A stretch of DNA of 64,000 nt, taken from the NCBI GenBank assembly GCA_002269645.1, contig NIVC01000197.1:186001-250000 (forward strand), written 5' to 3'. The stretch comes from Macrostomum lignano. Lineage: Eukaryota. Position 1 is the first letter of the stretch. Every line of letters starts with the position of its first letter. Below, in pieces: positions 31,981 to 57,620 of the stretch. The notes beneath the pieces are model-generated. The model was given only the letters and a program-made list of their open reading frames with translations. It did no database searches and was not told the DNA's origin. A program made the position numbers and the translations under genes.

Positions 31981-32089
31981 CTGCGGATTAATTAGATGGG
32001 GAATAAGCCCCGGCTCCAGCTGATCCCAAATTCTAGCCTAGTTCCCTGCTGTGACTAATTTGGAAATTGCTGCAATGATGAAATCGGTG

Positions 32090-33950
32090 CTTCAGTGGCC
32101 GCCTCTGACCAGCCACCAGACATTCAGTGGCTGCAGCTGACCAGCCACCGGAGCTTCAGTGGCCGCAGCTGACAAGCCACCGGAGCTTCAGTGGCCGCAG
32201 CTGACCAGCCACCGGACATTCAGTGGCCGCAGCTGACCAGCCACCGGACATTCAGTGGCTGCAGCTGACCAGCCACCGGAGCTTCAGTGGCCGCAGCTGA
32301 CAAGCCACCGGAGCTTCAGTGGCCGCAGCTGACCAGCCACCGGAGCTTCAGTGGCCGCAGCTGACCAGCCACCGGAGCTTCAGTGGCCGCAGCTGACCAG
32401 CCATTGGAGCTTCAGTGGCCGCAGCTGACCAGCCACCAGAGCTTCAGTGGCCGCAGCTGACCAGCCACCGGACATTCAGTGGCCGCAGCTAACCAGCCAT
32501 TGGAGCTTCAGTGGCCGCAGCTGACCAGCCACCGGAGCTTCAGTGGCCGCAGCTGACAAGCCACCGGAGCTTCAGTGGCCGCAGCTGACCAGCCACCGGA
32601 GCTTCAGTGGCCGCAGCTGACAAGCCACCGGAGCTTCAGTGGCCGCAGCTGACAAGCCACCGGAGCTTCAGTGGCCGCAGCTGACAAGCCACCGGAGCTT
32701 CAGTGGCCGCAGCTGACCAGCCACCGGACATTCAGTGGCCGCAGCTGACCAGCCACCGGACATTCAGTGGCTGCAGCTGACCAGCCACCGGAGCTTCAGT
32801 GGCCGCAGCTGACAAGCCACCGGAGCTTCAGTGGCCGCAGCTGACCAGCCACCGGAGCTTCAGTGGCCGCAGCTGACCAGCCACCGGAGCTTCAGTGGCC
32901 GCAGCTGACCAGCCATTGGAGCTTCAGTGGCCGCAGCTGACCAGCCACCAGAGCTTCAGTGGCCGCAGCTGACCAGCCACCGGACATTCAGTGGCCGCAG
33001 CTAACCAGCCATTGGAGCTTCAGTGGCCGCAGCTGACCAGCCACCGGAGCTTCAGTGGCCGCAGCTGACAAGCCACCGGAGCTTCAGTGGCCGCAGCTGA
33101 CAAGCCACCGGAGCTTCAGTGGCCGCAGCTGACAAGCCACCGGAGCTTCAGTGGCCGCAGCTGACCAGCCACCAGAGCTTCAGTGGCCGCAGCTGACCAG
33201 CCACCGGAGCTTCAGTGGCTGCAGCTGACCAGCCACCGGAGCTTCAGTGGCCGCAGCTGACCAGCCACCGGAGCTTCAGTGGCCGCAGCTGACCAGCCAC
33301 TAGAGCTTCAGTGGCCGCAGCTGACCAGCCACCAGAGCTTCAGTGGCCGCAGCTGACCAGCCATCGGACATTCAGTGGCCGCAGCTGACCAGCCACCGGA
33401 CATTCAGTGGCCGCAGCTGACCAGCCACCGGAGCTTCAGTGGCCGCAGCTGACCAGCCACCGGACATTCAGTGGCCGCAGCTGACCAGCCACCAGAGCTT
33501 CAGTGGCCGCAGCTGACCAGCCACCAGAGCTTCAGTGGCCGCAGCTGACCAGCCATCGGACATTCAGTGGCCGCAGCTGACCAGCCACCGGAGCTTCAGT
33601 GGCCGCAGCTGACCAGCCACCGGAGCTTCAGTGGCCGCCTCTGACCAGCCACCGGACATTCAGTGGCTGCAGCTGACCAGCCACCAGAGCTTCAGTGGCC
33701 GCAGCTGACAAGCCACCGGACATTCAGTGGCCGCAGCTGACCAGCCACCGGACATTCAGTGGCCGCAGCTGACCAGCCAGCGGACATTCAGTGGCCGCAG
33801 CTGACCAGCCAGCGGACATTCAGTGGCCGCAGCTGACCAGCCACCAGAGCTTTAGTGGCCGCAGCTGACCAGCCATCGGACATTCAGTGGCCGCAGCTGA
33901 CCAGCCACCGGAGCTTCAGTGGCCGCAGCTGACCAGCCACCGGACCTTCA
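32090..33950. repeat. 32-bp minisatellite (cagtggccgcagctgaccagccaccggagctt), about 58 copies, KDM2 intron 2
   Basis: Direct reading; 512-bp internal duplication. Confidence 0.95.
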
Positions 33951-34155
33951 GTGGCCCGTGTCAGTCAGCCAGTCGCTCATTCAGTGGCCCGTGTCAGTCA
34001 GCCAGTCGCTCATTCAGTGGCCGGTGTCAGTCAGCCAGTCGCTCATTCAGTGGCCCGTGTCAGTCAGCCAGTCGCTCATTCAGTGGCCCGTGTCAGTCAG
34101 CCAGTCGCTCATTCAGTGGCCGGTGTCAGTCAGCCAGTCGCTCATTCAGTGGCCA
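33950..34155. repeat. 33-bp sub-array (cagtggcccgtgtcagtcagccagtcgctcatt), about 6 copies
   Basis: Direct reading; shares ttcagtggcc and cagcca with the 32-mer. Confidence 0.9.
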
Positions 34156-34198
34156 CCTGCCAGCAGGCAATTCCAATCACAGCCAACATTAGTCTCAC

Positions 34199-34561
34199 CT
34201 GGCCGGGCTGATGCGAGTTCTTCAGCTCGGTACCGTACTCAGCCATCCGCTCCGCGTAGGCGGCCAGATCCTCGCCCTCTTCCCTAGGCGGCACAACGTG
34301 CTCCCGGCGCATCAGGCAGCCGGCATAGCGGGCCAACACGTACCAGTGCAGCTGCATGAACAGCGGGAAGCGGAACTGACGTTTCACTCGGGTTTTCTCT
34401 TCCAGCTCCCACACTCGCAGCTGCAGTTTGATGTTCAACGAGTGCAGATAGTTGCCGCCGAATACTAGCGAGTCCTCCGGCGTGTACACTGCGTGCATCC
34501 AGCCCGTGGGGATGAAGAAGGTGTTGCCCGGCTCCAGCTCTACTCGCTGGCACTTCTCCAC
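34199..34561 (-). CDS. KDM2: KDM2 exon 2 (JmjC C-terminal half)
   Basis: Acceptor caacag; FIPTGWMHAVYTPEDSLVFGGNYLHS; donor gtgaga. Confidence 0.92.
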
Positions 34562-34594
34562 CTGTTGGTTAAGTAGTTGAACATTTTGTTGTGA

Positions 34595-36610
34595 CCCTCC
34601 CGACTTCAGTGACTGACCAATCACCTCTCAGACTTCAGTGACTGATCGATCACCCTCTCAGACTTCAGTGACTGACCAATTACCCCCTCAGACTTCAGTG
34701 ACTGATCGATCACCCTCTCAGACTTCAGTGACTGACCAATTACCCACTCAGACTTCAGTGACTGACCAATTACCCACTCAGACTTCAGTGACTGATCGAT
34801 CACCCACTCAGACTTCAGTGACTGATCGATCACCCACTCAGACTTCAGTGACTGATCGATCACCCTCTCAGACTTCAGTGACTGATCGATCACCCTCTCA
34901 GACTTCAGTGACTGACCAATTACCCCCTCAGACTTCAGTAGTGACTGATCGATCACCCTCCCGACTTCAGTGACTGACCAATTACCCCCTCAGACTTCAG
35001 TGACTGACCAATTACCCCCTCAGACTTCAGTGACTGACCAATCACCCTCTCAGACTTCAGTGAGTGACCAATTACCCCCTCAGACTTCAGTGACTGACCA
35101 ATTACCCCCTCAGACTTCAGTGACTGACCAATCACCTCTCAGACTTCAGTGACTGACCAATTACCCCCCCCCCAGACTTCAGTGAGTGACCAATCACCTC
35201 TCAGACTTCAGTGAGTGACCAATCACCTCTCAGACTTCAGTGAGTGACCAATCACCTCTCAGACTTCAGTGAGTGACCAATCACCTCTCAGACTTCAGTG
35301 AGTGACCAATCACCTCTCAGACTTCAGTGAGTGACCAATCACCTCTCAGACTTCAGTGAGTGACCAATCACCTCTCAGACTTCAGTGAGTGACCAATCAC
35401 CTCTCAGACTTCAGTGAGTGACCAATCACCTCTCAGACTTTAGTGAGTGACCAATCACCTCTCAGACTTCAGTGAGTGACCAATCACCCCCTCAGACTTC
35501 AGTGAGTGACCAATCACCTCTCAGACTTCAGTGAGTGACCAATGACCCACTCAGACTTCAGTGAGTGACCAATGACCCACTCAGACTTCAGTGAGTGACC
35601 AATCACCCACCTTGACTTCAGTGAGTGACCAATCACCCACTCAGACTTCAGTGAGTGACCAGTCACCCACCTTGACTTCAGTGAGTGACCAATCACTTCT
35701 CAGACTTCAGTGAGTGACCAATCACTTCTCAGACTTCAGTGAGTGACCAATCACCTCTCAGACTTCAGTGAGTGACCAATCACCTCTCAGACTTCAGTGA
35801 GTGACCAATCACCTCTCAGACTTCAGTGAGTGACCAATCACCCCTCAGACTTCAGTGAGTGACCAATCACTTCTCAGACTTCAGTGAGTGACCAATCACT
35901 TCTCAGACTTCAGTGAGTGACCAATCACCTCTCAGACTTCAGTGAGTGACCAATCACCTCTCAGACTTCAGTGAGTGACCAATCACCTCTCAGACTTCAG
36001 TGAGTGACCAATCACCTCTCAGACTTCAGTGAGTGACCAATCACCTCTCAGACTTCAGTGAGTGACCAATCACCTCTCAGACTTCAGTGAGTGACCAATC
36101 ACCTCTCAGACTTCAGTGAGTGACCAATCACCTCTCAGACTTCAGTGAGTGACCAATCACCCCTCAGACTTCAGTGAGTGACCAATCACTTCTCAGACTT
36201 CAGTGAGTGACCAATCACCTCTCAGACTTCAGTGAGTGACCAATCACTTCTCAGACTTCAGTGAGTGACCAATCACCTCTCAGACTTCAGTGAGTGACCA
36301 ATCACCTCTCAGACTTCAGTGAGTGACCAATCACCTCTCAGACTTCAGTGAGTGACCAATCACCTCTCAGACTTCAGTGAGTGACCAATCACCCCTCAGA
36401 CTTCAGTGAGTGACCAATCACTTCTCAGACTTCAGTGAGTGACCAATCACCTCTCAGACTTCAGTGAGTGACCAATCACTTCTCAGACTTCAGTGAGTGA
36501 CCAATCACCACTCAGACTTCAGTGAGTGACCAATCACCACTCAGACTTCAGTGAGTGACCAATCACCCCTCAGACTTCAGTAAGTGACCAATCACCCTCC
36601 CGACTTCGGT
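34595..36610. repeat. 29/30-bp minisatellite (cagacttcagtgagtgaccaatcacctct), about 69 copies, KDM2 intron 1
   Basis: Direct reading; 30-bp gtgactgacc variant block followed by 29-bp block. Confidence 0.95.
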
Positions 36611-36721
36611 GAGACAGTACTTTCTTACATTAATATTCAAAGCAGTACAGAGCATTATTTAACCATAAACGAAAATATTCTAGGCTATTAGCGAACATGA
36701 AAAAATAAACAAATGACTCAC

Positions 36722-37465
36722 CATATCCCCAAAGAAAGTGGCATCCTGCCTACCGGACAGTGTCCACTGTTCAAACAGTTGAAAATTGCGTTCGGTAGGC
36801 GGCACCAACCAGAAGACTTTGCGGCCGCGCAGAATATGATACCAAACACTGGTGCCGCCCATATCGACGTGCCAATCTGTGTAACAATCGGCCACGCTCA
36901 TCAGTACATACTTGCGCACCTTCGGATAGAACATTGTGTCCATAGAATTGAGCGCGTCCATTTGTTTCTCGCGCAGATACGGCGGCCAAGCCCGATCGAT
37001 CCAGTCAATCTGGCGAACAACAGTTGGACTCTCCACATAATTATCCAGCTTAGTGTGCGAGAATTCCAAGCTGATTACGTTGAGAATGCGGTCCCTATTG
37101 GGGTCTGTGTAGTAGTCAGTCCACTGGCGCATGGTCATAACCAGCGCCTGCTGGGTGCGAACATCCATGACGTCCACAGGGCGCCTGGCGCCAACCATGA
37201 GCTTGACATCGGCTACATTAAACGACTCTGAGGGGACCCGCAGGCCGAGGCCGGTTTTATTTTTAAACAATAACGGATTGCGGAAGCCGTCCCGCTGTAG
37301 CTCGGCGAGGCCGAAGCCTTCGCCAGTGTCGCGGACGTCCACAAAAGTGGCCGAATAGTTGGTGGAGTTGAGCTTCTCCTCCAGGTCCCACTCGCGCTGC
37401 CCGTCAATCAGTGGGTCGTAGTCCTCCTCGTCTGGGGTCTTGCGTTTTAGTCCTGGACGCACCAT
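36722..37465 (-). CDS. KDM2: KDM2 exon 1 (JmjC N-terminal part)
   Basis: ILNVISLEFS, YPKVRKYVLMSV, TDWHVDMGGTSVWYH, KVFWLVPPT; donor gtgagt; three exons give 751 aa. Confidence 0.93.
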
Positions 37466-37937
37466 GCTGGTTGCTGCTTTTTAGGCTATAGACACTAGCT
37501 AGCAGTGCTGGAGATTGGCCAGTGCGATTGGATGTTTAATCTGATGCCAGTATGAGCAAGCCTTTATTAAGAGATGGGGTGGATTCTAGGGTCAAGACCC
37601 AAAGTAGAGGCAGAAGGACCTGTTTTTTCGTTCCACAGATACTAAATGTTATTTTGAATTTCTAAAGTTTAATTACAATTACAGTATACTTTATATCAAA
37701 CAGATAAATAAATACTAATTTTTAACTTTTTAGCCATCTTTTAAATACCATAGACGGTTGCTTTACTGCACCAGTGTGCGCTTGTGCAAATGTTTTAAGA
37801 CATATAAAGGTAAACAGCAAGAGTAACTATGGCTGTATTTAGCTACCTAAATGCCTCGTCATGTAAGTACCTTTTTATCGTTTTTGCTTTATAGAATTTT
37901 TGCTATGTTGTATTGTGCTTGTCTGCTTTAGCTAGCC

Positions 37938-38129
37938 TAGAGGCAGATTTAGAAATATAATAAAATGAGGATAGGGAATGCCATGTTATTCACAAGAGGG
38001 GCGCCATAATATATACTAGAGGGGAGCCATACTGAACAAACTGAGGGCAATAAGGACCTTTTTGGCCCAAAAGAAAAGGGGCACCATCATTGGTAGACAT
38101 AAGACTATCTACCTTAAAATCTGCCCCTA
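37938..38129. mobile_element. 192-bp hAT-type MITE
   Basis: TIR tagaggcagattt / aaatctgccccta (12/13); perfect 8-bp TSD agctagcc at 37930-37937 and 38130-38137. Confidence 0.85.
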
Positions 38130-40921
38130 AGCTAGCCTACTACTAATTTGTTAAGATGCACTTCTAATTTTCAATTAATACAAGAAATTGTCTTAGAAAA
38201 GCTTTATTAACTTCTTTGGCGCCCAAATAGGTTCTTGTTTCTTTGAAAACTAGAACATTGGCAGAAATGCTCTTAGAACAATGGTAAATGAGAAAATCGA
38301 AATATATTTTAATATAACTTACTTAAAAAAATTAAATATCAAATAAAAAAACATGATACCCAAGGAAAAAGCTAAAATTTTAGGATGCCATTTAATGTAA
38401 GATTAGGATAGAGGGCCCAGGGGGTATACTATACATTTGATCTAGAACATGAAGAATGATGACACAAATCAAGACAATGCCACAAGTTTTAAATACTCTA
38501 AGGTATTTAACTTAGGGCCTAGTATTCGATTTAAATTTGTATTGACTGTTATAAAAGGTTATGCTACAAAATCGATCCTAATAGAAATATATAGAACTTA
38601 TAGTCCAGGTATAGACTGTGTTGATCGATGCTGATAGTGATAAGCTTAACAATAAGCGATTTTATAAATTGAAAATATGATCATTGATTGGGTGTAAACC
38701 CTTGGCCTAAAATAACAACTACACGGGCGAAAATAGTCTAGGCCTACTACTACTAGTCAAAGACAAGAACAACAACTTTATCAAATTAGGCATTGGGTCC
38801 TAAGCCTAGTCTATTAAGGGCTAGAAATAAAAATAGGACATGTTATAAACTTGAAACCTTAGTTTAATCGCCTAATATTCTATTAGGCCTGGTAGAATAA
38901 TATATTAGATATTTAACCACAATAATTTAGGTCGAGTTATGATCATAGGCCTAGGCCTAACTAAACTTATAGATAATAACTAACACTTTGATTCTTGTGA
39001 AAAGACAAAGCAAATTTAATTCGAACTTTATACTAGAAGTAGAAATAAACCATTAAGAGAAGTTTCAGTATCATGATTTTTTTCAAATCGATTGGACTCT
39101 TATAGAGGTTGTATATTTTAAATTTTATCAAACATCTTAATTCCAGCCATAGTTAATTAATTACAAAGTCCGAAAATACAGCAAATCACGAACTATTCTA
39201 CTGGAAGTAGCCTTATACAGATTAAATAAGACAAGTGCATAAGCAAAATTGAAATTCTGCTACTATTGCAGTACAGTTTCTGTAAAGTTCCAGAATTTTA
39301 AAATAAAATTATAAGTATCTTGATTGAAACTTTAAAAAATAAATTTAACCCACAGTTAACTTTATAGCTTAATTACTTAAATCGTTTGCTGTGCTACTGC
39401 CTACTATTCCAGGCATTTTTAATACATGTAAGTAAATGAAATAGTTTGTATTGAGTTTAAAATATTTGATTTTCGCTTTCCATTGAAACCCAGGCGAAAC
39501 ATCAAATAACAAATCAAAGACATCAATATTATATCATCCCATTTGGTAAACTAAAGCCTTGTAATTTACGTTACAATTTATTATACGAAGCGGGCGGATT
39601 GATTATTTACATTTTTGCTTCAAGATCCAAATTGAACCTGAAGATTGTATTTTCCTTTTTGAGCAAAAGCAATATAACAATATCTATATTTTCTGTATAG
39701 CATCGATAATTCACACATTGTCTGTTTAAAAAAATCCGAAGTATTAAAATAAAATTAGTTCTTGTTTTTGTGCAAAGAACATTCTTTCTTGTTGTTTTTT
39801 TAATATAAATTGAATGTGCACTGGGGGGCGAACTATGGGCAATATAATTCATGCCCGCCGTTGAACGTCGACGAAGATATGAAGAACAACCAAAATTAAG
39901 TAACGTCGGGCTTAGCACCACCTTCTGGCCAAGGCCTATGCGATATGGCTCCTCGCAGAATATTAAGACTGTATGATGGGTATATGTATACTACGTGTAC
40001 ACATTTATATGATCGGGTGCAGATTACGATCGCGTGCATGTATTTCGCATGCACAACCGCTGTAACATCTAGGTACAGTACAGTTCATCTTATATTATTT
40101 ACTGACGCAGATGTGCAGCATGTAGCTGCGTTATTTCACTGAGCTGCCAATCGAAAATTATGTCAATTTGATTTTTCGACAGTTCAAACTTAAATTACAT
40201 TTACGTGCATCTTCACATGCACGTGTGGCATGTGCATGTACAAATGGTACTTTTCACTCAAATTTAAATGTTTATGGACAGTATAACTACATGTTTAAAT
40301 CCCTGAATTGAAGCTGTACAATAATTTACATGCATGCATGCATGCATGAGCATGACTGTCCCATAAATGCATATGCATTTTATAAAGCTACACTCAACAA
40401 CAGTCAAAAGTTCCACCTGCCAAGCAAATATATTTTTATTCACCATTTACTGTGTATTTTAAATGAGAATTTTTATCTCTACCTACACGTGATTTGTACA
40501 GGTGGAAATTTTGACTGTTGCTGAGTATATGTATCAACCAAGCTTTTAAACACTTATACATTTACTAAAAGGTTTGAGAAAGTGTAATATTAATGCTCGT
40601 ATGCTGTAGTTACTGTCAGAGAGCTAGCACTATAATTGCACCAGCTAGCCGTTTACGCCACAAGCCACATGTACACTGTGTGACATATATACACATTTTA
40701 CATCTTGTATCTGCGAGCAAGCTACAAGTATAAAGTATAAAGTATCGAGTATAAAGCTAGATTTTTATTTTAAACATTATTGGTAGAAAAAACTGAGTCT
40801 GCATGAATGCACTTTATTTTCTTGCATGAAAGTATTGAGTCCGAGTCATACAACACAACTTCTTAACTTTAGGGTCTCAAAATAGTGGGTGATTTTTCCG
40901 GGTTTTTCCGGGTCTATCTTT

Positions 40922-43110
40922 GAGTCCGCTTCGGGATAAATCGTGCGCCGGCTGCTTTTTATAAGGTGCTATCGAAAGTGCTGGAGAAGATCAAGGGCGT
41001 CGTGCACTATATCGACGACATCGTGGTCAACTCAGCGACCAGAAGTGAGCACGATAAGGCTGTCCAGGCAGTCCTGGAGCGTCTCAAGAAGCGCAAATCA
41101 CGCTGAACCTAGAGAGCTCTGAGTCAGTGGGCCAGCGACGGCGTGGAGTTCCTTGGCTGTGTTCTCAGCAGTGAGGGCCTCCGGCCGATCACATCCAACG
41201 TGGACGCCATCACAAACATCAAAAGTCCAAAGTGTCAGAAGGAAGTCCGGCCGTCTCGTTTCTTGGCATGGTGAAGTTTTATGACCACTTATTTGACAAC
41301 CTGTCGACAGTGGCTCCGTTGCTGCAGCTACTGCGGAAGGACGCGACATGGCAATGGACGGCGAAGCAGCAACAGGCATTTGAGTCTCTGAAGTCGATGA
41401 TCGTGTCGCCACCATGCCTGAAGTTTTTCAACACCGAGCACGGCACGATCGTCGCCTGTGACAGCTCAGCTACAGCAATTGGCGCAGTCCTCGCCTAAGA
41501 AGACGAGCATGGCGCAACTGCCGCCCTGGCCTTCGCGTCAAGAACGCTGAACGCGGCAGAACGCACGTACTCGGCCTCCGAGCGCGAAGCTCTGGCGTGC
41601 ATCTTCGCGTGCGAACGATGGAATTTCTTCCAATTCGGCCGAAATTCGAGTTGCAGACGGACCACCGGGCGTTGACTACTCTGCTGAGCACCCTCGGCAC
41701 CGGCCACAGGCCACTACGACTCCATCGCTGGGCAGACAGGCTGATGGCCTACGACTTCAGCATCAAGTACATCGCTGGGAAAAGCAACACCGTCCCAGAC
41801 TTTCTGTCCCGATGCCAGCCCGATGAAGCTGAAGTCGACGACAACAGCCTCTGTGGCGATCAGGCTGTCAATGCGATCCTCCTGTCTGGAGTACTCAACC
41901 TGGTGTCCGTGGAGCAGCTAGCAGCCGCAACCCGCGAAGACACCGTTCTGCAACAGGTGATCCAGATGGCCAGAATCAAGCAAGCAACTGGAAGCGGAGC
42001 TGCTACCTTTCTGGAAGGTCCGCGGTGAGCTGTCAACGTGGAACAACGGCAGCTGCCTGGCCAAAGGCGCCAGGGCAGTCATTCCACTGGCGCTGCAAGA
42101 GACAGTGCTGAACCTGGCTCACTTCGGTCACCTTGGCATCAGCCGGACAAAGCAGCACTACCGAGAAGCTGTTTGGTGGCCGAACTTTGATCGAGGCGTC
42201 GAAGACTTCATCAAGAATTGCAAGCCATGTGCCGTGAGTGAAAAAAACATTTAAGCCTCCAAGGGTGCTGCTCACACCGACGAGATGGCCATCTCAGCCG
42301 TGGAGTGAGGTGCAAATTGACATCTTCGGAGAGCTGACGGCTCCGGCGCTGCAGACCTGTCGGTTTGTCCTGGCAGTTCACGATTTGCACTCCAAGTGAC
42401 CAGAGTTCGCCTGCCTGCCATCTGTGACGGCATCGCAAGTCATCAGCGTCCTAAAGTCACTCTTCGCCAGATGGGGACTCCCGAAGCTCATCAATACATA
42501 GGGACGGTAGACCGCAGTTCACGTCCACCGAGTTCGAGGAATTCTTCAAAGGCCACGGCATCGAGCACCGCAGGTCGCCAGACAATTATCCTCAGGGGAA
42601 TTCCGGCGTTGGGCGTCTGAACAGGTTCCTCAAGGAGGGGCTGAAGAGCCAACTGGCTGACGGCTAAGAGTTCAAGGACGCCATCTGGATGCTGCTGTAG
42701 TCCTACAGGGCGACTCCGCACGCGCTTGCTGGCGTCTCTCCAGCCGAGCTGAAATATGACGACCCCGCTCTCGAAGCTGAAGCCGAGCCAACCGAGAGTT
42801 CATCCAGCGGCCGCAGGCATCCGAGATCGACAGAGGCTGAACCTGGAGACTCGAAATCAAGGCCGGGTGCCGCCGCCGCAGTTCGCACCTGGTGAGAAAG
42901 TGCGCGTTCGACGGCCGCAGGCTCGCGGCAAGCTGGCCAGTCGGGTGTCCGAGCCAAGGACGGTCGCTGCGATGTGCAGCCCCACAATCTTCAAACTCGA
43001 CGACGGCTCCCGCTGGCATGTTACAGCACTGATGCGGGCGCCAGGCGTCGGCGAAGGAGTCGCGAAGGCGTCGGCGAAGGAAAGAGCAGGACGATGCACG
43101 GGTAACTGAC
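40922..43110 (+). mobile_element. Degenerate Ty3/Gypsy pol (RT-RNase H-integrase), 5'-truncated
   Basis: HYIDDIVV, ACDSSATAIGAVL, YSASEREAL, TDHRAL, HLGISRTK..WWP..CKPC, QIDIFG in Gypsy order, with stops and frameshifts. Confidence 0.9.
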
Positions 43111-43114
43111 GGCC

Positions 43115-43630
43115 AGTTTGCGGCAGCGAAGATTTGCGGCGTCGCCGCGGGCTCGCTTGGGCTGCCTTTCGCTCTGTGAGGGCGGTCCTGCAGTCCGAGG
43201 CCCTACCTGACCGCCAGAGGGCGGCGCTGTTCCAGGCGGTGGTCTAGACCGTTCTGTTGTACAACGCCGAGACTTGGACGCTGACGGATTCGCTCGAACA
43301 GCAAGTCAACGCGGCGCACGCTGGCCTGCTGCGCGCCGCCTTTATGATCAGGGACGAGCGGATCACTAATGCGGCACTCTATCGCCGCGCCGGCCTGGCC
43401 CGTCCAAGTGAACTGCTGCGACTTCGGCGACTCCAGCTGGCAGGCCACATCATCCGCGCCGAGTCCTACTGCCCGCAGCCGGTGCAGGAGGTGCTGCTGC
43501 TAACGCTGCAGGCACCCTACCGGCGCGGCTAGGCCCGAACTCGGCGTTACGTTGACTGCCTGCTGGCCGATGCTGGCGCCCCGGACTCTGCCGGGGTGCG
43601 GCCTTTGTTCGCACCCAGGCTCTGAAACGT
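43115..43630 (+). mobile_element. RTE-clade non-LTR retrotransposon 3' fragment
   Basis: RRGLAWAAF..LFQAVV*TVLLYNAETWTLT..RRLQLAGHIIR. Confidence 0.8.
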
Positions 43631-44239
43631 GCCCTGTGACGCTGCTTTTTTCCACCTGACAGCGTACTTTGTTGTTGTTGTTGTTGTTTTGATCCCGAAT
43701 GGGGGACAAGGGTTGTTTCTTTGGAGACACAGTCAAAGAACCTGCCTCTCTTCCGAGTCTTCATTTTGTCCCCTGCACAGATAGAACAGCTCTCTCAAAC
43801 CTCAATCCCATCTGACATTGTCCATCACTGTACGTTGTATTTTTAAGAAGTCATGAATTCATTTTTTATAATGGATCACTCCTACTAGCAAAATAGTATC
43901 ATAGCCTCCACGTAAATGTCAACTACTAGCTGAGAAGAGCAAGTGCAATTGCAAAGGATAAATTTGTACTTTCTAGCTTAACCACTTACCTACGACAGAA
44001 TACCTTCCCCACATCCCTACGCTCGTATCTTACCAGATCGGCAAGACAATTTTGATTCTGCGCTGTATACTTTGAATTCCAAAACAGTTGCTACATTATG
44101 CACAAACAAGAAAACCCTTTCTCAACAGGAGAAGTGACACCTTTGATTGGAGAATTGTCTATGGCCAAGCTAGAAAAAGTCAAGAGAGAGAAAATACAGG
44201 CTGAAAAGTTAACTGAAAGAATTTTTTCACGTGCCTCCT

Positions 44240-44688
44240 CAGCTGAACATATGGGAGGTGTGGATCGGATGGATGCCGCAGCCCAGCCTTACAGCGCATG
44301 TCGCCGAACACACAAATGGTTCGTAAAGCTGGTGGTATTTCTGCTACAGCAACTGGTTCGCAACATCTAGGAAAGAAAGCATCTAGGTGGATCGATGAGC
44401 TTTCTCAACTACACTGAAAGGTGTGTAAAGCACTTGATTGAAAGCAGCGGAAATGGTCGATCCAGAGTTAAGCGTCGGGCTCTTCCCCGTCAGTCAGGCG
44501 ACATCCATCATCACCGGCTGGAAAAGCTACCTGCTACCGCAGTACAAGAACGGCATACCAAGCGTAGCCGAGTTTTTTACCAGCGCAGGCTGAAAAAGCG
44601 GACCCTTCTGTACCTCTGCCAAAGCTGTGACGGTCAGCCTGAGCTTTGCCTGAAGCCGTGCTTCTTTGAATGGCGCTCGGCTAACTGA
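44240..44688 (+). pseudogene. piggyBac transposase C-terminal fragment
   Basis: MGGVDRMD, RRTHKWFVKL, Cys-rich end CQSCDGQPELCLKPCF; one in-frame stop; no TTAA ends found. Confidence 0.8.
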
Positions 44689-45315
44689 TTGTTGAAACCT
44701 ACTTTTCATTCACTTACACGCAACTTCATCTGCCCGTATGTTCTTAATATTTACTCTTGTTAGTGCCCACTGCCCACCCCAGAAGACGAACGCAGCAAGC
44801 TCAAGAGCAGCAAATGGCGCAGGAACAGCGAGGAGGTCAGGGAAGGCTGCCATGCACTCCCCCCCCCGTATATTTCAGACCGATTACGAGAAAATATTCA
44901 AGCAATATTGACAACAGTTAGAACGGATCAAAGCAGGATTAAAAGAGTGACAGGATACGAAAAAAATTTTTTTTCAATTGCAATGCGACAGCGAGGCCAA
45001 AGAGCCAACCGCGGGGATAAAAAAAACCCCGCCACGCAACCCCCCCCCCAACACCGGGGGTGGGGGGAAGCCGCGGGGGAGGGGCAGGGGTGGGCAGCGT
45101 ACACAAACGCCAGTTAGCGCAGCCCGCGCAAACTAGCCATACCCATGGATGAATGAATAGAATGGATTGCTATTCTGGCTCTGGCTATTTTCGTTTTTGA
45201 CTCTTTTGCATCCGGTTCCCCCCCGTGCCTTTTCATTGGTTGATGATTGCCATAGACAATTTTCGGCCTTCGCCCCTTTCTTTCGATGCACAAGCGCAAA
45301 GAACTGAGAATGTCA

Positions 45316-45361
45316 GTTACTTGCAGAGAATATCGAGCGCTCGATATTCTCTGGTTACTTG
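45316..45361. other. Probable transposon excision footprint: 30-bp perfect palindrome between 8-bp direct repeats
   Basis: gttacttg-cagagaatatcgagcgctcgatattctctg-gttacttg. Confidence 0.8.
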
Positions 45362-45799
45362 TTTGTCAATTGAAGTTGTTAATTGAAGCAGAGGAATGAT
45401 AACAAATCCCCTGCAAATTACAACAGTAATGATTTCAGATTTTCATGTCGAGGGTGATGATGAGGGTGCGATGACAATGCTACAATAATGGATTACTGGC
45501 GATGCTTTATCTGAATTTTACTATTGGAGTTATGAAATTGGTTTTAAAGTTCTATTTCAACACAAGTAACTTCTATTTCGCCCATCATCATCATCGAGGG
45601 AGTACCTTTGTGTGTGCATCACGCATCAAAACTTGTGGTACACGATTCTATTAACGTACATGACAACACAGACTGTTAGAATGGTGAAATTGAGTGAAAT
45701 TGGAACAGGAAAACAACACACATATACGATACCAGTAACGATGAGAACAGACTGTTAGAATGATTAAATCATATGAAATTAGAGTCGGAACACTACAGC

Positions 45800-46035
45800 C
45801 CAATGTTAGGAGCACAGGACAATCTTTAGCTGTTACTGGCCGAGAAAGAGAATACTGAGCTCTTTGTCAAGACAAACTGCGGTGCCATCTTCACATTGCT
45901 CATCCATTCGGTCAGTTGAAGTGGAGATTTGACAGGAAAAGAAAAGAAGCTGATATTCACTCCAGTGTCGTCCCGCATCCCTGACTTGGATAGACATCCT
46001 AGTGCAGCACAGTAGCGCTTTGAGCCATTAGGCAT
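45800..46035 (-). pseudogene. THAP zinc-finger relic
   Basis: YCAALGC..SFFSFP..EW; expected CSxHF appears as FS-F; stop follows. Confidence 0.75.
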
Positions 46036-46514
46036 GGTAGTGATAAAAGTAAAATAAGCAGTGAGTAAACAACAACAACAAGCGCAAAGAACTGATTTTA
46101 TTGTAGACGAATCGACTCTCGAATCGTGCTTGTAGGTCTTCCCCCTTTATTTCAAAACACGAGCGAAAGCGCTTGTGCATCGAAAGAAAGGGGCGAAGGC
46201 CGAAAATTGTCTATGGCAATCATCAACCAATGAAAAGGCACGGGGGAACCGGATGCAAAAGAGTCAAAAACGAAAATAGCCAGAGCCAGAATAGCAATCC
46301 ATTCTATTCATTCATCCATGGCCATACCTGCAATGTATGCCATTTCCTATTGACACATGGCCAAGCATTCTTAAATTGCTGACACTATTCATTGTCTATG
46401 GCCAAAAAGCAATCCTTCACCAATAACGCGACTGTGCTGTAAATTCCAAGCCGTGCTGTAAATTCCAAGCCGTGCTGTAAATTCCCGCACGTATTCAACT
46501 TATTAAATTTATTT

Positions 46515-48170
46515 AATTCTACCTGAGCTACTGGTCTAATTCTACCTGAGCTAATGAGCTATTCCTGCCTAAGCTACTGTCTCAGTACCTGAGCTACTGA
46601 CCCAATTCTACCTGAGCTACTGATCTAATTCTACCTGAGCTACTGAGAAAATTCTACCTGAGCCACTGACCCAATTCTACCTGAGCTACTGGTCTAATTC
46701 TACCTGAGCTAATGAGCTAATCCTGCCTAAGCTACTGTCTCAGTACCTGAGCTACTGACCCAATTCTACCTGAGCTACTGAGAAAATTCTACCTGAGCTA
46801 CTGACCCAATTCTACCTAAACTACTGGTTTAATTCTATCTGAGCTACTGACCCAATTCTATCTGAGCTACTGACCCAATTCTACCTGAGCTACTGAGAAA
46901 ATTCTACCTGAGCTACTGACCCAATTCTACCTAAACTACTGGTTTAATTCTATCTGAGCTACTGACCCAATTCTACCTGAGCTACTGAGAAAATTCTACC
47001 TGAGCCACTGACCCAATTCTACCTGAGCTACTGGTCTAATTCTACCTGAGCTAATGAGCTAATCCTGCCTAAGCTACTGTCTCAGTACCTGAGCTACTGA
47101 CCCAATTCTACCTGAGCTACTGAGAAAATTCTACCTGAGCTACTGACCCAATTCTACCTAAACTACTGGTTTAATTCTATCTGAGCTACTGACCCAATTC
47201 TACCTGAGCTACTGAGAAAATTCTACCTGAGCTACTGACCCAATTCTACCTAAACTACTGGTTTAATTCTATCTGAGCTACTGAGAAAATTCTACCTGAG
47301 CTACTGAACCAATTCTACCTGAGCTACTGGTCCAATTCTACCTGAGCTACTGAACCAATTCTACCTGAGCTACTGGTCCAATTCTACCTGAGCTACTGAA
47401 CCAATTCTACCTGAGCTACTGGTCCAATTCTACCTGAGCTACTGACCCAATTCTACCTAAACTACTGGTTTAATTCTATCTGAGCTACTGACCCAATTCT
47501 ACCTGAGCTACTGAACCAATTCTACCTGAGCTACTGGTCCAATTCTACCTGAGCTACTGACCCAATTCTACCTAAACTACTGGTTTAATTCTATCTGAGC
47601 TACTGACCCAATTCTACCTAAACTACTGGTTTAATTCTATCTGAGCTACTGAGAAAATTCTACCTGAGCTACTGAACCAATTCTACCTGAGCTACTGGTC
47701 CAATTCTACCTGAGCTACTGAACCAATTCTACCTGAGCTACTGGTCCAATTCTACCTGAGCTACTGAACCAATTCTACCTGAGCTACTGGTCCAATTCTA
47801 CCTGAGCTACTGACCCAATTCTACCTAAACTACTGGTTTAATTCTATCTGAGCTACTGACCCAATTCTACCTGAGCTACTGAACCAATTCTACCTGAGCT
47901 ACTGGTCCAATTCTACCTGAGCTACTGACCCAATTCTACCTAAACTACTGGTTTAATTCTATCTGAGCTACTGACCCAATTCTACCTGAGCTACTGAACC
48001 AATTCTACCTGAGCTACTGGTCCAATTCTACCTGAGCTACTGAACCAATTCTACCTGAGCTACTGACCCAATTCTACCTGAGCTACTGAACCAATTCTAC
48101 CTGAGCTACTGAACCAATTCTACCTGAGCTACTGAACCAATTCTACCTGAGCTACTGAACTAATTCTATC
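46515..48170. repeat. About 23-bp minisatellite (aattctacctgagctactgaccc) with higher-order blocks
   Basis: Direct reading. Confidence 0.93.
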
Positions 48171-48506: not shown

Positions 48507-50054
48507 ATGATTTACGAAGCATCAACGGGCGAGCCTATTGGATTGCTGCATATGTCGCAAGGAGATGTCGTTGGTTTGTCGTCTTCTGAGATTGACGAGC
48601 GAATCTGGCGGGAGGCGACTATGCAAGGCATGCTGGACGATCTGGCTCAGTTGGATGTGAATGAAATCAAGGTGCTGTTAGCTGGTCAAGATCCGGAACG
48701 AGACTTGCTCAGGGAGATGGATGTAATGCAACTCGACACTACGCCAAAGTCAGCTCTGTTGCAAGAAAAGTGGGCACTTCGTAAGTTCAACGAGGTGCTT
48801 TCAAGCGAGGTGCTTTCAGACTACGCCTGCGATCTGAATACAGCCGATATCGAACAGTTTGTCACTGGCTTGCGAATCTTCTATGTTAGCTGGTCAGTTT
48901 AGAGTGAAGAGTTCTACTATGCTTTTGTTCGTAAAATTGACGGTGGCTTCTATGCGCTTGCTTCGTTGATTACCGCTCGAGCTGGTGTTTTCCGCTATTT
49001 GCTGCGTGTCCGTGACGTTAATATTATCGAGGATCCGCGCTTTGCAAAGGCCAACATGCAATTGAAGGCTACAGCCGCCATGTTCATCAGATCAGGCGGC
49101 ACCGTCAGATAGTTCTGCGCCTTGGAGACAGAGGATCTAGAAAAGCTGCGCCGCTACTTCGATCGAAGTAGCCCGACCATTTTGCAGCAGGAGGTCTACT
49201 ATGTATTAGCCTTGCAGTTTGGCTTGCGTGGACGCGAATGGTTCCGTAAGCTAACTACGGATTCTATTGAGAGATGCAACATCAATGGGCGACGCACATT
49301 CAGGCTGGCATCAATGGAAACCAAGACTGTTCGAGGAAGTTTAAAAGCGCGGACCTCAGAAGATAGGAAGCAGAGTGCGATTGTCGAAACCTTTGAAATA
49401 GGATGCCCCTACGAGTGTGTTGAGCTTTACCTGAGCAGGATCGAAGAGGCCAAGAGAAAAGAGGGAGTGTCGAGCTCCGTTGTGTTCATACGTCCCCGAG
49501 TACGCGGCTTTGCAGAGTCGTGGTATTTTGCTAAGCAGGTTGTAGGCGTCAAGACTCTTGGGAACATGATGAGTGGCATCTCCAAAGCGGCTAATTTGAG
49601 CAAGATTTATACTGGCCACTGTCTAAGAGTCACCCTGGCAACCGAGTTGAGTGCAGCTGGAGTGTCCCTGAGGGATATCAGCGCTGTAACGGGACACAAA
49701 ACTGAAACAGCTGCACAAAGGTACATTCGGAACAGCAGAAAGCGTGACGGAGAGATGGCTGGGCTGTCTGTAAGGATCAGTTCCATCGGCGAGGAAAAGA
49801 GCGCAAGGATAGAGATCCCGCACGACGAGGTGCGTGTGCCGACGCCCGGCTCAGAGGTACCGGCTGATGCGTTGCTACCGGAGACCAGTGCTCAGGCCGA
49901 TGTGCGACAGCAATCATCTACAGCCACGAGGGCTAGAACGGCAGATGCAAACGTTGGCTACAGCTATATCGGGCACATTCAACAACTGCCAATTCCACGT
50001 GCATATTTCGAACATGCCTTGATCCGGCGTACAGCTTGGACCGATTTATACTAA
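48507..50054 (+). pseudogene. Crypton-like tyrosine recombinase (DUF3504/KCTD1/ZMYM-related), one frame with two TAG stops
   Basis: VRKIDG..Y..SL..RAG..RYL, GLRGRE, ETKT, TGHCLR, VTGHK, QRYIR; stops at 48900 and 49110 in the same frame. Confidence 0.85.
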
Positions 50055-50112: not shown

Positions 50113-50254
50113 ATATTAAGTTTTTATAATGTTCAACTGCTAAATATAGCATTAAGTAGTTAGTTCAGACGTTGGCTTCGGCCAGACATTCAAAGCGTGC
50201 AACAATCTGGCTTGATTGCTATACCCCTAAAAACCCCTCCAAAATGATACAATG
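50113..50254. repeat. Left arm of 142/144-bp inverted repeat (partner 52499-52642)
   Basis: Near-identical reverse complement; 2-bp deletion in left copy. Confidence 0.9.
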
Positions 50255-50839
50255 CGTTATGGCTCTATTTCTAGCATACCTATGGTGTTTGGTAGCTAAA
50301 TAAGAATTAATTCAGACAGTTATTTTCTTCACCGAATTACTTCATCAAATATTGTTTGCTGTCACGCTGATCGATCGCTGCAGCAGATACATGCATTTAG
50401 AACACGCAAATTTGAATGTTTGAATTTCAATATATAGAGTACAATTCTTTATCACCAGGCTGGAGTTGATCGTCGTTTGTGTAGGCAGCGCCTACTATCA
50501 TTGGCGTTGGGTTGTTTGTTAGCGGCTGCGCCGCGTGACTCAATCGCTATATATACATATATATATCTTCCCCCTGCGCAAGTACAATATCAAATGTGCA
50601 TGATGCGACTTTAGCCACCACCCTGACTCAGTTCAATTCAGCCAATAAAATATACTGATCGCTATTATTCTCGCCTGCAAGCTTTCGGCAACTATCGACA
50701 ACAAGCGTGCAGTCTAGTCTCGTTTCACTCGCTACAGTGGCATGGCAAAGCAACCGCACCCAACGCGGAATGGTCACAAATTACATCGCTCTAACGCCTC
50801 CTGAATACATTTGTCATCTCCGACGAACCTCACAATGCT

Positions 50840-52185
50840 GGCAAGCGCTGTCATGAATAGGCAGTGCGCTTCACAGACTTTATCAAGGCGTCCGGAGTTG
50901 CAAATGAGAACCAGAAGTGCAAGCTGCTCTGCTACACTGCCGGAAAGGAGCTCTCGGGCATCGTTCGCGAGCTGCCAAAGCTTTGGGTTGTAGGTGAACA
51001 GGAGGAGCACACACGGGTCAGCATATTTGATGGACTGAAGCGCCATTTCGACGACAGGAAAACATCGTTTTCGAGAGATACCAATGTTCTCTAAAGCGTC
51101 CAACAATAATCGGCCGTGAAAAATCGAGGCAGCTGCATGGTACAGCAGACTGCGGACGGCAGCCGAACCTTGCGAATTTAATTCACTCAGCTCGTCGCGA
51201 CATGCACCTCCGACAAACTGCGCAGACGACCACATGTACTCCAAGAAGCAGACGTCACGTACGTTGGACGATGCCCTGCGGAAGGCCAGAGCATTCGAAT
51301 CTGCGGAAGAGCAGGCTGCTGAGATGAAGAAGACCCCCGACGCCTAGGTACAAATGTAGGTAGCGTAGCCAGGAGCAGCAAAGCAGCGACAGGCAGACGC
51401 GGATCCGCCAGCAAACCGAGATCAAAGCCGAGCCAGTTGCCGACCTGCTACCGCTGCGGCGAGCGCGGCCACGCCACCTGCGACGCAGCCATATGCAGGG
51501 GCAATATCTGCAACAACTGCGATAAGCCAAATCAACATGGCCAAGGCGTGTCGTCAACCGCACTCAGCCGGCAGCAGAGTCCCGCAGCAGATCCACGTCA
51601 ACGCAGACTGCACGGTCCCCGACGCTGTCGCCAGCGAAGACCTGTTCACCCTGCACAGAGACGGCACCTTCCCGGGTGAGGAAGTGGGAAGTCGGTAGCT
51701 CTCGATGCTGATCGACAGCGGCGCCAGCTGCAGCATACATGTAATGAGCAGCCGCACTTTTAAGACGCTCAATTGGCCTCACCTGCGAGCTCCATTGTCG
51801 GAAGTCAGAGCCTACAGAGCTCTGTGCACCACTCAATATTTTAGGAATCGCCGACCTGGAAGTTCAAGTCGGAGCAGCCAGTACCGTCGTCCCCTTCCAC
51901 ATCATGGATGGCGATGGTCGCACAATACTCGGTTGCAATCCCGCATTCAGGCTCGGAGATCTCAAAACTCAGTACCCGGAGTTCAGTGGACGCCAATTAA
52001 GCAGCACCTGCACCACGACAGACTAGACGCCTGTCTTCACCACCTCCGCGAATTCAGCAGCGTCACGCTGAACAAGGACAAGTGTAAGTTCGCCAAACCG
52101 GGGGTCGAATTTCTCGGGATGCACCTGTCAGACAAGGGCATCCAACCAGCTGCTGAGAAAATTTGCGCAATTGTTCATTCTTTTG
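50840..52185 (+). mobile_element. Heavily deleted Gypsy remnant (gag, zinc knuckle, protease, RT fragment)
   Basis: CYRCGERGH, LIDSGAS, LNKDKCKFAKPGVEFLG. Confidence 0.8.
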
Positions 52186-52498
52186 ATTGACCATAGACAA
52201 ATTTGAAGTCGAAGGGAAAGCGATTTTAGACAGAATCATGTCTTACTTAACCAGATGGAATACATGTATGTCATAGCGAAGAAACTGCTTGTATATCATT
52301 CTGCGTCACAACGGAAGGAAACAAATGAAGTATTGTTGCACGCTCAGACTACTTTATTGTTGCACGCTCCAAATGTCTATGGGTAATAGCTGCGCCCAAA
52401 ATAATACAATGCCAGTGGAGAATGGCTATATCGTGCACCAATGTTTTTGACCGAGGGCGCGCAGCTACTAGCTAAAACAGCTAAAACAGTTACTACAT

Positions 52499-52642
52499 CA
52501 TTGTATCATTTTGGAGGGGTTTTTAGGGGTATAGCAATCAAGCCAGATTGTTGCACGCTTTGAATGTCTATGGCCGAAGCCAACGTCTGAGCTAACTACT
52601 TAATGCTATATTTAGCAGTTGAACATTATAAAAACTTAATAT
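52499..52642. repeat. Right arm of inverted repeat (partner 50113-50254)
   Basis: See left arm. Confidence 0.9.
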
Positions 52643-54930
52643 ATGGCGCAACCAGAAATTTGGGAGCGGATTCTAAAGAGGGTAAAAGAACCAAAAGGAC
52701 CGGGGGCGGAGGGGATGGCTCTAAATTTTGGCGAATATGCGCTTGGTCCGCCTTTCATTTTTCAGGTCTCCGCCAAAAAGGTGGCGGTCCCCGCCCCTCC
52801 TAGTTGCGCCACAGCATTAAAGGGATTAAAGAGTAATGTATTCAAGGTAAACGCAATGTCAAGATTACGTTTAGATTTACTTTTTGGAAAATCGTTTACT
52901 ACGACTACGAGCAATATTTAAAATATTTCAAGACATTTTGATCAAAACGAAATCCATGATATATATAGGAGGACTTCAGTGTTCACTCACAAGTTGTCAG
53001 TACTTTTAAACTAAATTTAATCACGCAGCTTGACTGTAGCGTTGTGTGCTTTGCCTAGGTTTCACCGAGTCAATCTATTTTCTAATCTTTAATTAATGTC
53101 AGAAATAGGTATGGTATGGACGATAATATCTAGTGAATCTGTGCTTTTTTACTCAGTAATATTTCTCTATCTAGAAGTGTAAATCTACGTCTCTAGTCTA
53201 ATTTTTAACAAGGCCTAAGTCAAAGTTCTTAGTTCTTTCTAACTAACTATCAGCTAGTAATTATGATTATGAAATAATTTTGATGCAATAATAGTGACGA
53301 CCTAGTAAAGTTAATTCTAAGCCTAACTACACCTAAAACCAAATTTAAAGTAATGACAATGTAAATGAAAATGGAACAGTTTAGGCCTAATAGGCCTACT
53401 TTTTTAATTTTTAATATGCCACTGGCATCATATTCTAGAATCTAGACCCAAATCTAATAGTATGTATGTAGGCCTAACACATTAAATTATCTGCTTTTTA
53501 TTAGCTAGTAGGCATATGACTATCTCCTTAGATATGTGATATGTGACTGTCTAGTCTAGAGTATATGTATTTTTTGAGTTAAAGTATGATTAGACTACCT
53601 ATATTCTATGGTATAGGCTAATTTGACCTAATTAATTGAATCAAATTTCCATTGTTGAATTTTTGCTAAAGTGCATAGGTTATAATAAGAAAATATGATG
53701 TTAATATCTTTGAATCTAAAATTATACCATAGTAAGCTCATTGTAAATTTATTATAATATTGAGCCTTCTCTAATATGAAATGTTCTTTAGGTTGATGAA
53801 AAGGTTGGACAATATTGAATTTTCAATTTCAAAAAAGTATTTTTTTGACAATATGATATGAGATACAATTGAGATTTTGAGATACTTTATTCAGATAAAA
53901 CAAAGCTAATTTAAAGAATTTAAAGAATTGAAAAAAATAGATTTCTTTTTACAAAATTTCTATATTCAAAAACAACTTTAAACTTTGTGCACTTTTGTTA
54001 AAAAATCATAACCTTTAATTTGTAAACAGCATGGACATTTTTGGGTGTATATTATTTTTCCAAACATGGCTAAATCCTTTAATGAGTTGTTTTTTGGCAC
54101 TAATTTGATTCATATTAAATTCAATGTGTTTATATTAACTTCTAAGTAATCTATGCTATATTCAGAAGATTAATATTCAACCTAAGGCTCTTTATTTTAC
54201 TTTATTTTATATCTTAGATTCTTGACATTTTTAAAAATCATGATTCAACTGAGATTCAATCAGAAAAAAGTCGAAATCTTAAATATTAATTGCAAAATTG
54301 AGATCTTGTCTAACCTCTATCTTTATTTGTAGATTTATACTTTTATCAAAGCTAGGTAGGCCTAATATAGCAATGCAAAACCAATCTATTGTGCCGGGGG
54401 TTAGGCCTACCATTGTCTTATTACATAAAATCCTTAAAGCTATCTCATCAATATCATTAAGCTATGCTAGGCCTAAGGCTAATACTTCTCTATCATAATA
54501 AGTCCTAAAATCTATTATAAAAAGTGTCTTAAATCTATTTTTTATATTGCACTTTAATTTCTATGATTGCACTTTGTAACTCTGGTCTTAGTATACTTTT
54601 GGTGCCATCTTAGTTAGTGATGGACTAAGTATAGATTTTTGCAAGTTTCCTAAACTGAATCCAAATGTACAAAAATTCCAAATCTGAATATCCAAATATG
54701 TTTCCAAATATAAGCAAACGTAAAAAGTGAATGGAAGGAATAATTATGACACTTTTAAATAATAAAAATACCTTATTATCTAATTAATTATCAACACAAG
54801 CAACTAGTTAATGAAAACAGTCTCTCATCCCAGTGAGCTTTGGGGTTGGAATATTATAATATAAGGTGCTGGCAAGTTGCAGTAATTGGCCATGGCCACC
54901 CTATTTTTTTAGAAGTACCAATCCATATAT

Positions 54931-55899: not shown

Positions 55900-57620
55900 A
55901 ATGAGGTTGGAATGGCCTCTTATTGGTGCTAGGCATCTTCAGCATTGTAGGGTAGCAGGGTAGAGCCTCATTCTTATTTATGCCTTATTGAACCTCAGGT
56001 TTGCCAAGTAGTTCTTGAAAAATGTCTATGGAATTGTCATATTAGGCTATTAGCAATCTTATAGCAGTCTTGTTATAAAGAATCGATGTAATATAAGATC
56101 TCCAAAGCTTGCAAGGGCTTGCATTTATAGCCTGGTTGACTAAAAATTGGACTATATCATTGTGTTCCTCCTTGCACCTTAGGTGGGGTATACCAGAATT
56201 GACAGATTTTCTATTTATGTTTATAACTTTTTTTAGATATTTTAATGAGCAATATGTCTAATTAAGGATAAAATTTTGTAGATTATTATGATATTTGCAG
56301 ATTCACTTTTTGTGCATGTCAGTTTTTATAAGCAGATAACTATTACTAACATGAAATTTTTATAGATTGCTTATTTGCTTGCATGTCTTTTGACTAGTGG
56401 CCTGACTTTGACATGGCACCTAGTGGCCTATAATATTTTGTCTTGCACAGTATTCAAGAAATTATGAAACAATTGCTTTTCTACTCCCAGTGATCTTAGT
56501 CTAGATAGTGTATCTGCCTCAGGTATCTCCATAGATTGATAGCATTTGATAAAATACTTGTATTTGGCTCAATACTGAATTCTAGTGTTCACCAAGATAT
56601 ATTTTAATGACATGATGATTAGTGAGCAAGGTAAACTTCTCAGAAAACAAGTATTTACCCAGCTTTTTGACAGCCCAAACAATGGCCAAGGCTTTGTGCT
56701 CAATTTGTATAGTTTCTTTCCACTTTGCTTGGGATTTTCAAAATATAAAGAACACAACCATTAGACTGCTCTAGCATGGCACCTAGACCAAATGGTGAAG
56801 TGTCTGTTTTCAGCTTGATGTTTTATCATGAGGGTTGAACAGCTTGCTGATATCCACATTCAGAATCCTTCATTTAATTGCACTAAATGCTGCACTTTTT
56901 TGAGACCCCAGTGCCATTTTTCATTCTATTGCACAAAGTAAGCAAGGGGTTCCTTTATGGTGAAAAGGTTGCAGACCAGGCCCAAAGAGGCCATAGTTCC
57001 TTCATAGATTTAGGCTCTTCAATTCCTCTGATTGCTTCCATTTTGTCTAGTGATGATATCTTGCCTTCACCACTGATGCTTAAGCCTAGATGCTTGACTG
57101 CCATTTATTCTAGTTATTTGAAACAGTATTTGTCTTTAGAATCCATGTAATAAATTTCAGTTGTTCATTGTGTTCTGATTATATTCTACTGAGCACAAGA
57201 ATGTTATCCTGATATAATTAACAATCAGTTTTTCTTGTTCACTAAAAGCCAGTCCATGTATCCTTGAAAGATAGCAGGTGCTTGCTTGACTCTAAAAAAG
57301 GCCAATGTCTGTGGTTGATATAGGCCAAAAGGTGTACTAAAAGTTAGTATCTAACTTTGTAAAGACCCTTAAGTAAATTTAGCTGTCACCCCAGAAGATG
57401 CATAGAGTGGACACATTGCTGCTATCACTGATGACAATAGATAGCTTTGAAACAACACTGCTAGTCTTGGTCTTTATGTCTTTACTTTCCTCCTTTGAAA
57501 CAACAATTCCGATTATGTCAACAAATCCATAAAATGTTAAATTGGCCAATTTATAAAAAAACTTTGCAACATAGATTTCATGAGAATGAAATTGTGTCTT
57601 TTTTAAGGTTAGTTTAGTCA
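55900..57620 (-). mobile_element. Ancient CpG-depleted Gypsy pol relic
   Basis: Minus-strand RNase H segments DTSPFGLGAMLEQ (56767-56805) and KALAIVWAVKKLGKYLFSEKFTLLTNH (56600-56700); RT-like KMEAI..P near 57030; boundaries approximate. Confidence 0.7.

Follow-up and report, generated by a model that had tools for sequence, protein, structure and literature searches.

Results

The window analysed here is a 64-kb stretch of the genome of the flatworm Macrostomum lignano (assembly Mlig_3_7, contig NIVC01000197.1), and the non-arthropod origin supposed in the first-pass annotation is thereby confirmed. It contains a KDM2-like gene with JmjC, CXXC and PHD domains (30832-37465, minus strand), which we rebuilt from three exons into a 751-aa product that matches PAA88276.1 exactly. 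Minisatellites make up much of the window, and two of them lie in the region of the KDM2-like gene, with a 32-bp unit repeated 58 times at 32085-33956 and a 29-bp unit repeated 68 times at 34602-36613. At 50113-52642, a 2.5-kb unit with inverted repeats of ~142 bp that are 99-100% identical encloses broken gag (zinc knuckle), protease and reverse-transcriptase fragments of an LTR retrotransposon, an arrangement that suggests a foldback-type or composite element. Transposon debris at 44098-44688, 48507-50054 and 41232-43532 comprises C-terminal fragments of piggyBac-type transposases, LTR and non-LTR reverse-transcriptase fragments and a Crypton-like tyrosine-recombinase ORF (Phage_integrase and DUF3504). 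In the protein collection, neither the Crypton-like ORF nor the piggyBac fragments and other transposon ORFs are called as genes. Redundancy is high in the assembly (GCA_002269645.1), where blocks of ≥95% identity add up to 180 Mb and DNA transposons account for ~3% (PMC5730564).

Surrounded by this debris, positions 45316-45361 hold a 46-bp structure, hereafter called the scar, in which two exact copies of the 8-bp sequence GTTACTTG (45316-45323 and 45354-45361) directly abut a perfect 30-bp palindrome at 45324-45353. Both repeat copies were found by direct reading and by palindrome and TIR/TSD scans. The palindrome, found by direct reading and by an inverted-pair scan, consists of a left arm of 15 nt on the plus strand (CAGAGAATATCGAGC; 45324-45338) and a right arm on the minus strand (GCTCGATATTCTCTG; 45339-45353) that is its exact reverse complement, giving arms of 15+15 nt that are 100% complementary with a spacer of 0. 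The repeat and the palindrome thus exist as first described. As DNA, the scar can fold into a hairpin with a 13-bp stem (-12.5 kcal/mol).

The scar is exceptional within the window. Its palindrome is the longest perfect one among the nine with arms of at least 8 nt, of which the runner-up has arms of 10 nt, and in all the others the flanking direct repeat is at most 2 bp. Only the scar and the element that hosts it combine a perfect 10-bp TIR with a perfect 8-bp TSD, and a relaxed scan that allowed mismatches, spacers and TSDs of 7-9 bp added only minisatellite artefacts. By a rough estimate, a palindrome with 15-nt arms and an 8-bp flanking repeat is expected by chance 64000 x 4^-15 x 4^-8 = ~1e-9 times per window. 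To judge from its architecture, the scar preserves both tips of a cut-and-paste transposon, now lost, together with its 8-bp TSD, the interior being gone; the inverted tips between intact copies of GTTACTTG support the earlier view of a transposon remnant. The palindrome fixes only nucleotides 1-15 of the parent end, and the sequence cannot show which transposase family, P or hAT, lies behind the scar. The scar has no function of its own, and none is evident for its host. Rfam and tRNA scans were empty, and a structural RNA was rejected on this basis.

The host is a non-autonomous P-like element of 1,177 bp on the minus strand (45144-46320), located by inverted-pair and TIR/TSD scans and flanked by 8-bp TSD copies GCCATACC at 45136-45143 and 46321-46328. 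Its TIRs of ~155 bp (45144-45297 and 46169-46320) are of the CATG type, start CATGGATGAATGAATAG (CATGGATG) and are identical except for one C/G run that differs in length. The scar is situated 19 bp inwards from the inner border of the left TIR. A transposase-gene remnant at 45826-46035 (minus strand) is a 69-aa ORF that encodes the N-terminal half of a THAP zinc finger, and it matches Pfam THAP at 26.3 bits (cut-off 23.9) over profile positions 1-43 of 87. This partial coverage identifies the host as an internal-deletion derivative, and the RNase-H-like catalytic domain with its GTP-binding insertion is absent from this copy. When the THAP stub was compared with 1.84 billion representative proteins, P0137 was its closest relative by identity (48-54%); this protein combines THAP, Tnp_P_element (the P-transposase HTH), TNP-like RNaseH_N and GTP-binding insertion domains. 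In the protein collection, the host ORF had no word-sharing homologue and no exact gene call; a 24-mer of the host TIR had 0 exact matches in metagenomes, and the metagenome contigs that carry the nearest P-type relatives are unrelated and lack host and scar termini.

The 8-bp TSD, the CATG-start TIRs and the THAP remnant nearest to a P-type transposase place the host in the P superfamily by sequence, in agreement with the first-pass annotation. The host and a 288-bp MITE in one duplicate of the locus (described below) share CAT-start TIRs, 8-bp TSDs, a THAP-bearing transposase and internally deleted copies with zebrafish Pdre2 and THAP9. Zebrafish Pdre2 has a 13-bp TIR, CATACCTGTCAAC, that starts CATACC and an 8-bp TSD (PMC10983969). 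The ~155-bp TIRs of the host differ from those of vertebrate P-like elements in being foldback-like, and in that respect they are closer to Galileo.

Several smaller features were seen in and around the host. The 12-mer GCCATAGACAAT is over-represented in the window, with 15 matches at ≤2 mismatches against 5.4 expected. It occurs exactly at 44154, 45249, 46206 and 46391, that is, in both host TIRs and both flanks, and with 1-2 mismatches at 52190, 52563 and other positions, where a longer related stretch spans 52173-52204; it may be a transposase-binding motif common to related elements. At 45455-45593 inside the host lies a candidate nested element of 139 bp whose ends, TGATGATGAGGGTGCGA and TGATGATGATGGGCGAA, match but for one indel and which is flanked by the 7-bp repeat TCGAGGG, and this candidate may be due to chance, its ends being of low complexity. 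A link between the scar and the inverted pair GTTACTTGT/CAAGTAAC at 45354/45563 was rejected; the pair is 75% identical and is probably due to chance or part of another nested element.

Duplicated regions of the locus were fetched via paralogues of the KDM2-like protein PAA88276.1. An independently assembled contig of the same genome, NIVC01002574.1 (L130), is 99.2% identical to window positions 44135-46766 and repeats the 46 bp of the scar base for base at its positions 1406-1451, within the same host element, which again occupies the GCCATACC site. Three homopolymer indels are the sole differences between the two copies of the host. L130 represents a duplicate of this very locus, as opposed to a sister copy of the host that had transposed elsewhere, and its scar site is filled. 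Because the identical scar occurs in two contigs, it is not an assembly error and is older than the split of these duplicates. The comparison at the scar site is that of the window with L130; in the third duplicate, NIVC01000606.1, the sequence compared ends ~1.3 kb before the site, which falls within a gene-free 3.4-kb stretch (~228,700-232,147) between segments L131 and L127. An empty site with a single GTTACTTG was found neither at the window locus nor in the L130 duplicate.

Other elements with 8-bp TSDs are present in these regions. A 192-bp hAT-like MITE at 37938-38129, with ends TAGAGGCAGATTT and AAATCTGCC(C)CTA and the 8-bp TSD AGCTAGCC (window 37930-38137), occurs in all three duplicated copies (window, L130 and L131). 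In NIVC01000606.1, a 288-bp MITE (L127 8750-9037) has an 11-bp perfect CAT-start TIR, CATACATGCGC, and the 8-bp TSD CTTAAGCC. It is present in one of the three duplicates, and a clean single CTTAAGCC stands at window ~57076-57086 and in L128. An element with CAT-type, P-like ends has therefore transposed with an 8-bp TSD since the duplication. A further MITE of ~260 bp in L128 (~4674-4935) has the TIR GGCCTTTTCATATT and a 5-bp TSD CAGTG, and is absent from the window, where the empty site is at 52977-52981.

A parent family for the scar was sought with its terminal 17-mer, which has no second occurrence in the window at ≤3 mismatches. Neither the window nor ~100 kb of duplicated loci (L126-L131) yielded elements with scar ends, and none was found, among the matches listed, in IMG/VR or metagenomes. 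An exact scan gave 1 match in IMG/VR and >120 single matches in microbial metagenome contigs. Among the matches listed, none has the palindrome and only one contig (L024) has an inverted partner (≤2 mismatches), without a TSD; lacking palindrome or TSD, these listed matches are therefore attributed to chance.

Discussion

The best reading of the scar, to which we give an even chance, is a P-type excision footprint. A cut-and-paste transposon with ends beginning CAGAGAATATCGAGC would have inserted into the P-like host, duplicating the 8-bp target GTTACTTG, and the whole element would later have been lost except for ~15-17 nt per tip, leaving a donor-site scar. A P-type transposase would have cut the 3' strand at the boundary between element and TSD and the 5' strand ~17 nt inside the inverted repeat, so that the element's tip would have remained on each flank as a 3' tail. 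The tails would then have paired at the self-complementary GC or GCGC within positions 14-17, and fill-in and ligation would have produced a perfect palindrome between two intact TSD copies. As the two tails would be identical in sequence, they could pair only at a self-complementary stretch, and junctions formed in this way would be palindromic. Loss through excision, a P-type staggered cut and a parent from the P superfamily are what we infer in this reading.

Donor-site end-joining footprints after a 17-nt staggered P-element cut have reportedly been described by Beall and Rio (1997) and by Chan, Yu and McVey (2010). In Drosophila, excision of P{wa} leaves 17-nt 3' tails of the inverted-repeat tip (PMC2895639), and the 17-nt stagger is also given in PMC7776569. 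The commonest short-microhomology P{wa} junction, acccagac-CATGATGAAATAAC(AT)GTTATTTCATCATG-acccagac, is a 30-bp perfect palindrome between intact TSDs that was recovered in 14 isolates, and the next is 15+(TA)+15 = 32 bp (PMC2895639, Table 1). The scar has the same architecture, namely ~15 nt from each of the two ends, bracketed by TSD copies, and the resemblance to the Drosophila form of P excision followed by end joining that had been pointed out for it is sound. Intact 8-bp TSDs, ~14-17 nt per tip, a short self-complementary microhomology and a perfect palindrome of 30-32 bp are common to both. The flatworm scar differs in having GC or GCGC where the P{wa} junctions have AT or TA, in a tip that starts CAG and not CAT, in a cut position that is not readable from the scar, and in a parent that is putative.

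Comparable footprints of the confirmed P-like families would take a form such as CATGGATGAATG...CATTCATCCATG between 8-bp repeats, with a length of ≤34 bp. Both 8-bp TSD copies are retained in the scar, each inverted end keeps ≤17 nt (30 ≤ 34; 15, 16 or 17 retained) and the microhomology is 0-4 nt. Simple tail joining requires ≤17 nt per side, and the scar passes this weaker test. P-type transposons are also present in this genome, as the host with its THAP remnant, CATG-start TIR and 8-bp TSD shows, and the CAT-start MITE found in one duplicate only speaks for recent transposition with 8-bp TSDs. Against a P-type origin, the documented P-like ends of Drosophila P, zebrafish Pdre2, the host and the L127 MITE all start CAT, whereas the scar tip starts CAG. 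If gap repair stopped short and the ends were then joined at that same GCGC, an element of any superfamily would yield an identical product, and the filled duplicate L130 gives no direct evidence for a once-empty or once-full state. We regard it as slightly less than an even bet that the scar is a true P footprint of a second, undescribed P-like family of M. lignano with ends CAGAGAATATCGAGC..., which would make it a natural trace of a long P stagger conserved in Platyhelminthes.

The length of the palindrome had also been taken as evidence for a 17-nt cut, on the grounds that two 17-nt ends joined through four nucleotides give 17+17-4=30. This argument does not hold, as 2L-(2L-30)=30 whatever the value of L between 15 and 30. 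The solutions 15+15 blunt, 16+16-2 and 17+17-4 are equivalent, and the arithmetic is therefore silent on the cut position; even in Drosophila, whose cut is established, 16+16-2 is the palindromic junction seen most often. Likewise, the central GCGC carries no weight as microhomology, because any palindrome of even length has, by definition, a self-complementary centre, and the proposed 17-nt parent terminus shrinks to the first 15 nt, which are all that the scar determines. P-like chemistry outside arthropods would not be new either, since P-type transposase activity has already been shown experimentally for zebrafish THAP9 (PMC10983969).

A hAT-type element, or another element with 8-bp TSDs, with ends CAGAGAAT... 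that collapsed in situ by abortive gap repair is a possible source of the scar, albeit one we lean against. After excision or an internal break, the gap would be refilled with the sister chromatid or a duplicate copy as template; synthesis would stop ~17 nt into the element on each side, and the nascent strands would anneal at GCGC (SDSA and end joining) to form an immobile mini-element. The CAGAG termini and the 8-bp TSD point equally to hAT. The scar tip CAGAG fits the hAT terminal motif YARNG, and an 8-bp TSD is a hallmark of the superfamily (PMC3014272). The first 7 nt of the tip are identical (7/7) to the Hermes ITR CAGAGAACAACAACAAG, and Hermes starts CAGAGAAC (PMC3030943). The YARNG motif and the 8-bp TSD are shared with hAT ends such as those of hobo and Hermes, and a hAT-like MITE with an 8-bp TSD lies 7 kb from the scar. 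The hobo terminus is CAGAGAACTGCA. The target GTTACTTG fits only half of the hAT consensus nTnnnnAn, with T at position 2 but T instead of A at position 7 (PMC10368747). This misfit is weak evidence because the TSD AGCTAGCC of the neighbouring hAT-like MITE does not fit either. The scar also differs from hAT elements in keeping element tips and in having neither subterminal repeats nor hAT coding sequence (a BED/hAT-dimerisation transposase), as nothing lies between its 15-nt tips. According to Zhou et al. (2004), hAT excision is said to form hairpins on the flanking DNA and to leave no element nucleotides, and a hAT-derived scar would therefore need extreme incomplete gap repair. In flies, gaps made by a transposase are usually repaired by synthesis that starts from both sides, stays incomplete and gives way to end joining (PMC2895639). 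However, products of abortive repair normally keep hundreds of bases, and a symmetrical remnant of ≤17 nt per side is extreme; we found no documented hAT example of such a collapse. Ds, KP-type P elements and the host itself, which are abortive-gap-repair products, resemble the scar in having lost the interior while keeping both ends and the TSD, and in showing microhomology at the junction, but they retain hundreds of bases and are mobile, whereas the scar retains 30 bp and is almost certainly immobile. End-to-end joined episomal hAT circles were also considered and rejected, as the orientation of the tips is wrong.

The perfection of both TSD and palindrome would suit a 30-bp palindromic micro-MITE of two 15-bp inverted repeats, which would have been mobilised in trans and have generated the 8-bp TSD as it inserted, and palindromic MITEs consisting of almost only two TIRs exist in the mariner family (MADE1, 80 bp). 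Nevertheless, such an origin is very improbable. The window and the duplicated loci hold no second copy except at the same locus, and 30 bp is far under any known mobile unit. In hAT elements, the subterminal sequence required extends well past the TIR, and amounts to 200 and 150 bp in Tol2 (PMC10368747), and a 30-bp unit is therefore not mobilisable as such by hAT; P elements need internal transposase-binding sites (PMC7776569). Origins that involve no transposon, that is, a templated or snap-back insertion at a staggered break, chance, or an assembly or adapter artefact, have in our judgement next to no chance of being right. Polymerase-theta end joining can make short templated inserts (PMC2895639), which is nothing specific to this locus. 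The arms of the palindrome are not copies of the flanks and are therefore neither P-nucleotides nor templated from nearby sequence; P-nucleotides from hairpin opening were rejected for this reason. The chance expectation of ~1e-9 stands against coincidence, and the identical assembly of the scar in two contigs led us to reject an adapter or assembly artefact. Presumably, the scar sequence also matches no SMRTbell, Illumina or Tn5 adapter.

As a new instance of a known scar type, the P-type footprint that we favour is of modest novelty. If the parent was P-like, such scars would let the cleavage geometry of P/THAP9-type transposases be read from animal genomes without biochemistry, and they would flag active endogenous 8-bp-TSD transposases in M. 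lignano, which bears on transgenesis and genome stability in this neopolyploid model. Should the scar be a true P footprint, it would, together with the insertion found in one duplicate only, suggest recent P-like transposase activity in this transgenic model flatworm. With a hAT-like parent, it would be a curiosity produced by abortive gap repair in an extreme form.

The duplicated regions also differ in their genes. The KDM2-like gene spans 6.6 kb in the window against 3.3 kb in L130 (10001-13340), and this length gap is consistent with minisatellites filling the introns of the window copy, as judged from the window's introns. The UBA_4-domain gene at 58024-58635 has a single-exon product of 203 aa in the window and a spliced product of 259 aa in L127 and L128, which reflects either a difference between gene models or a real truncation.
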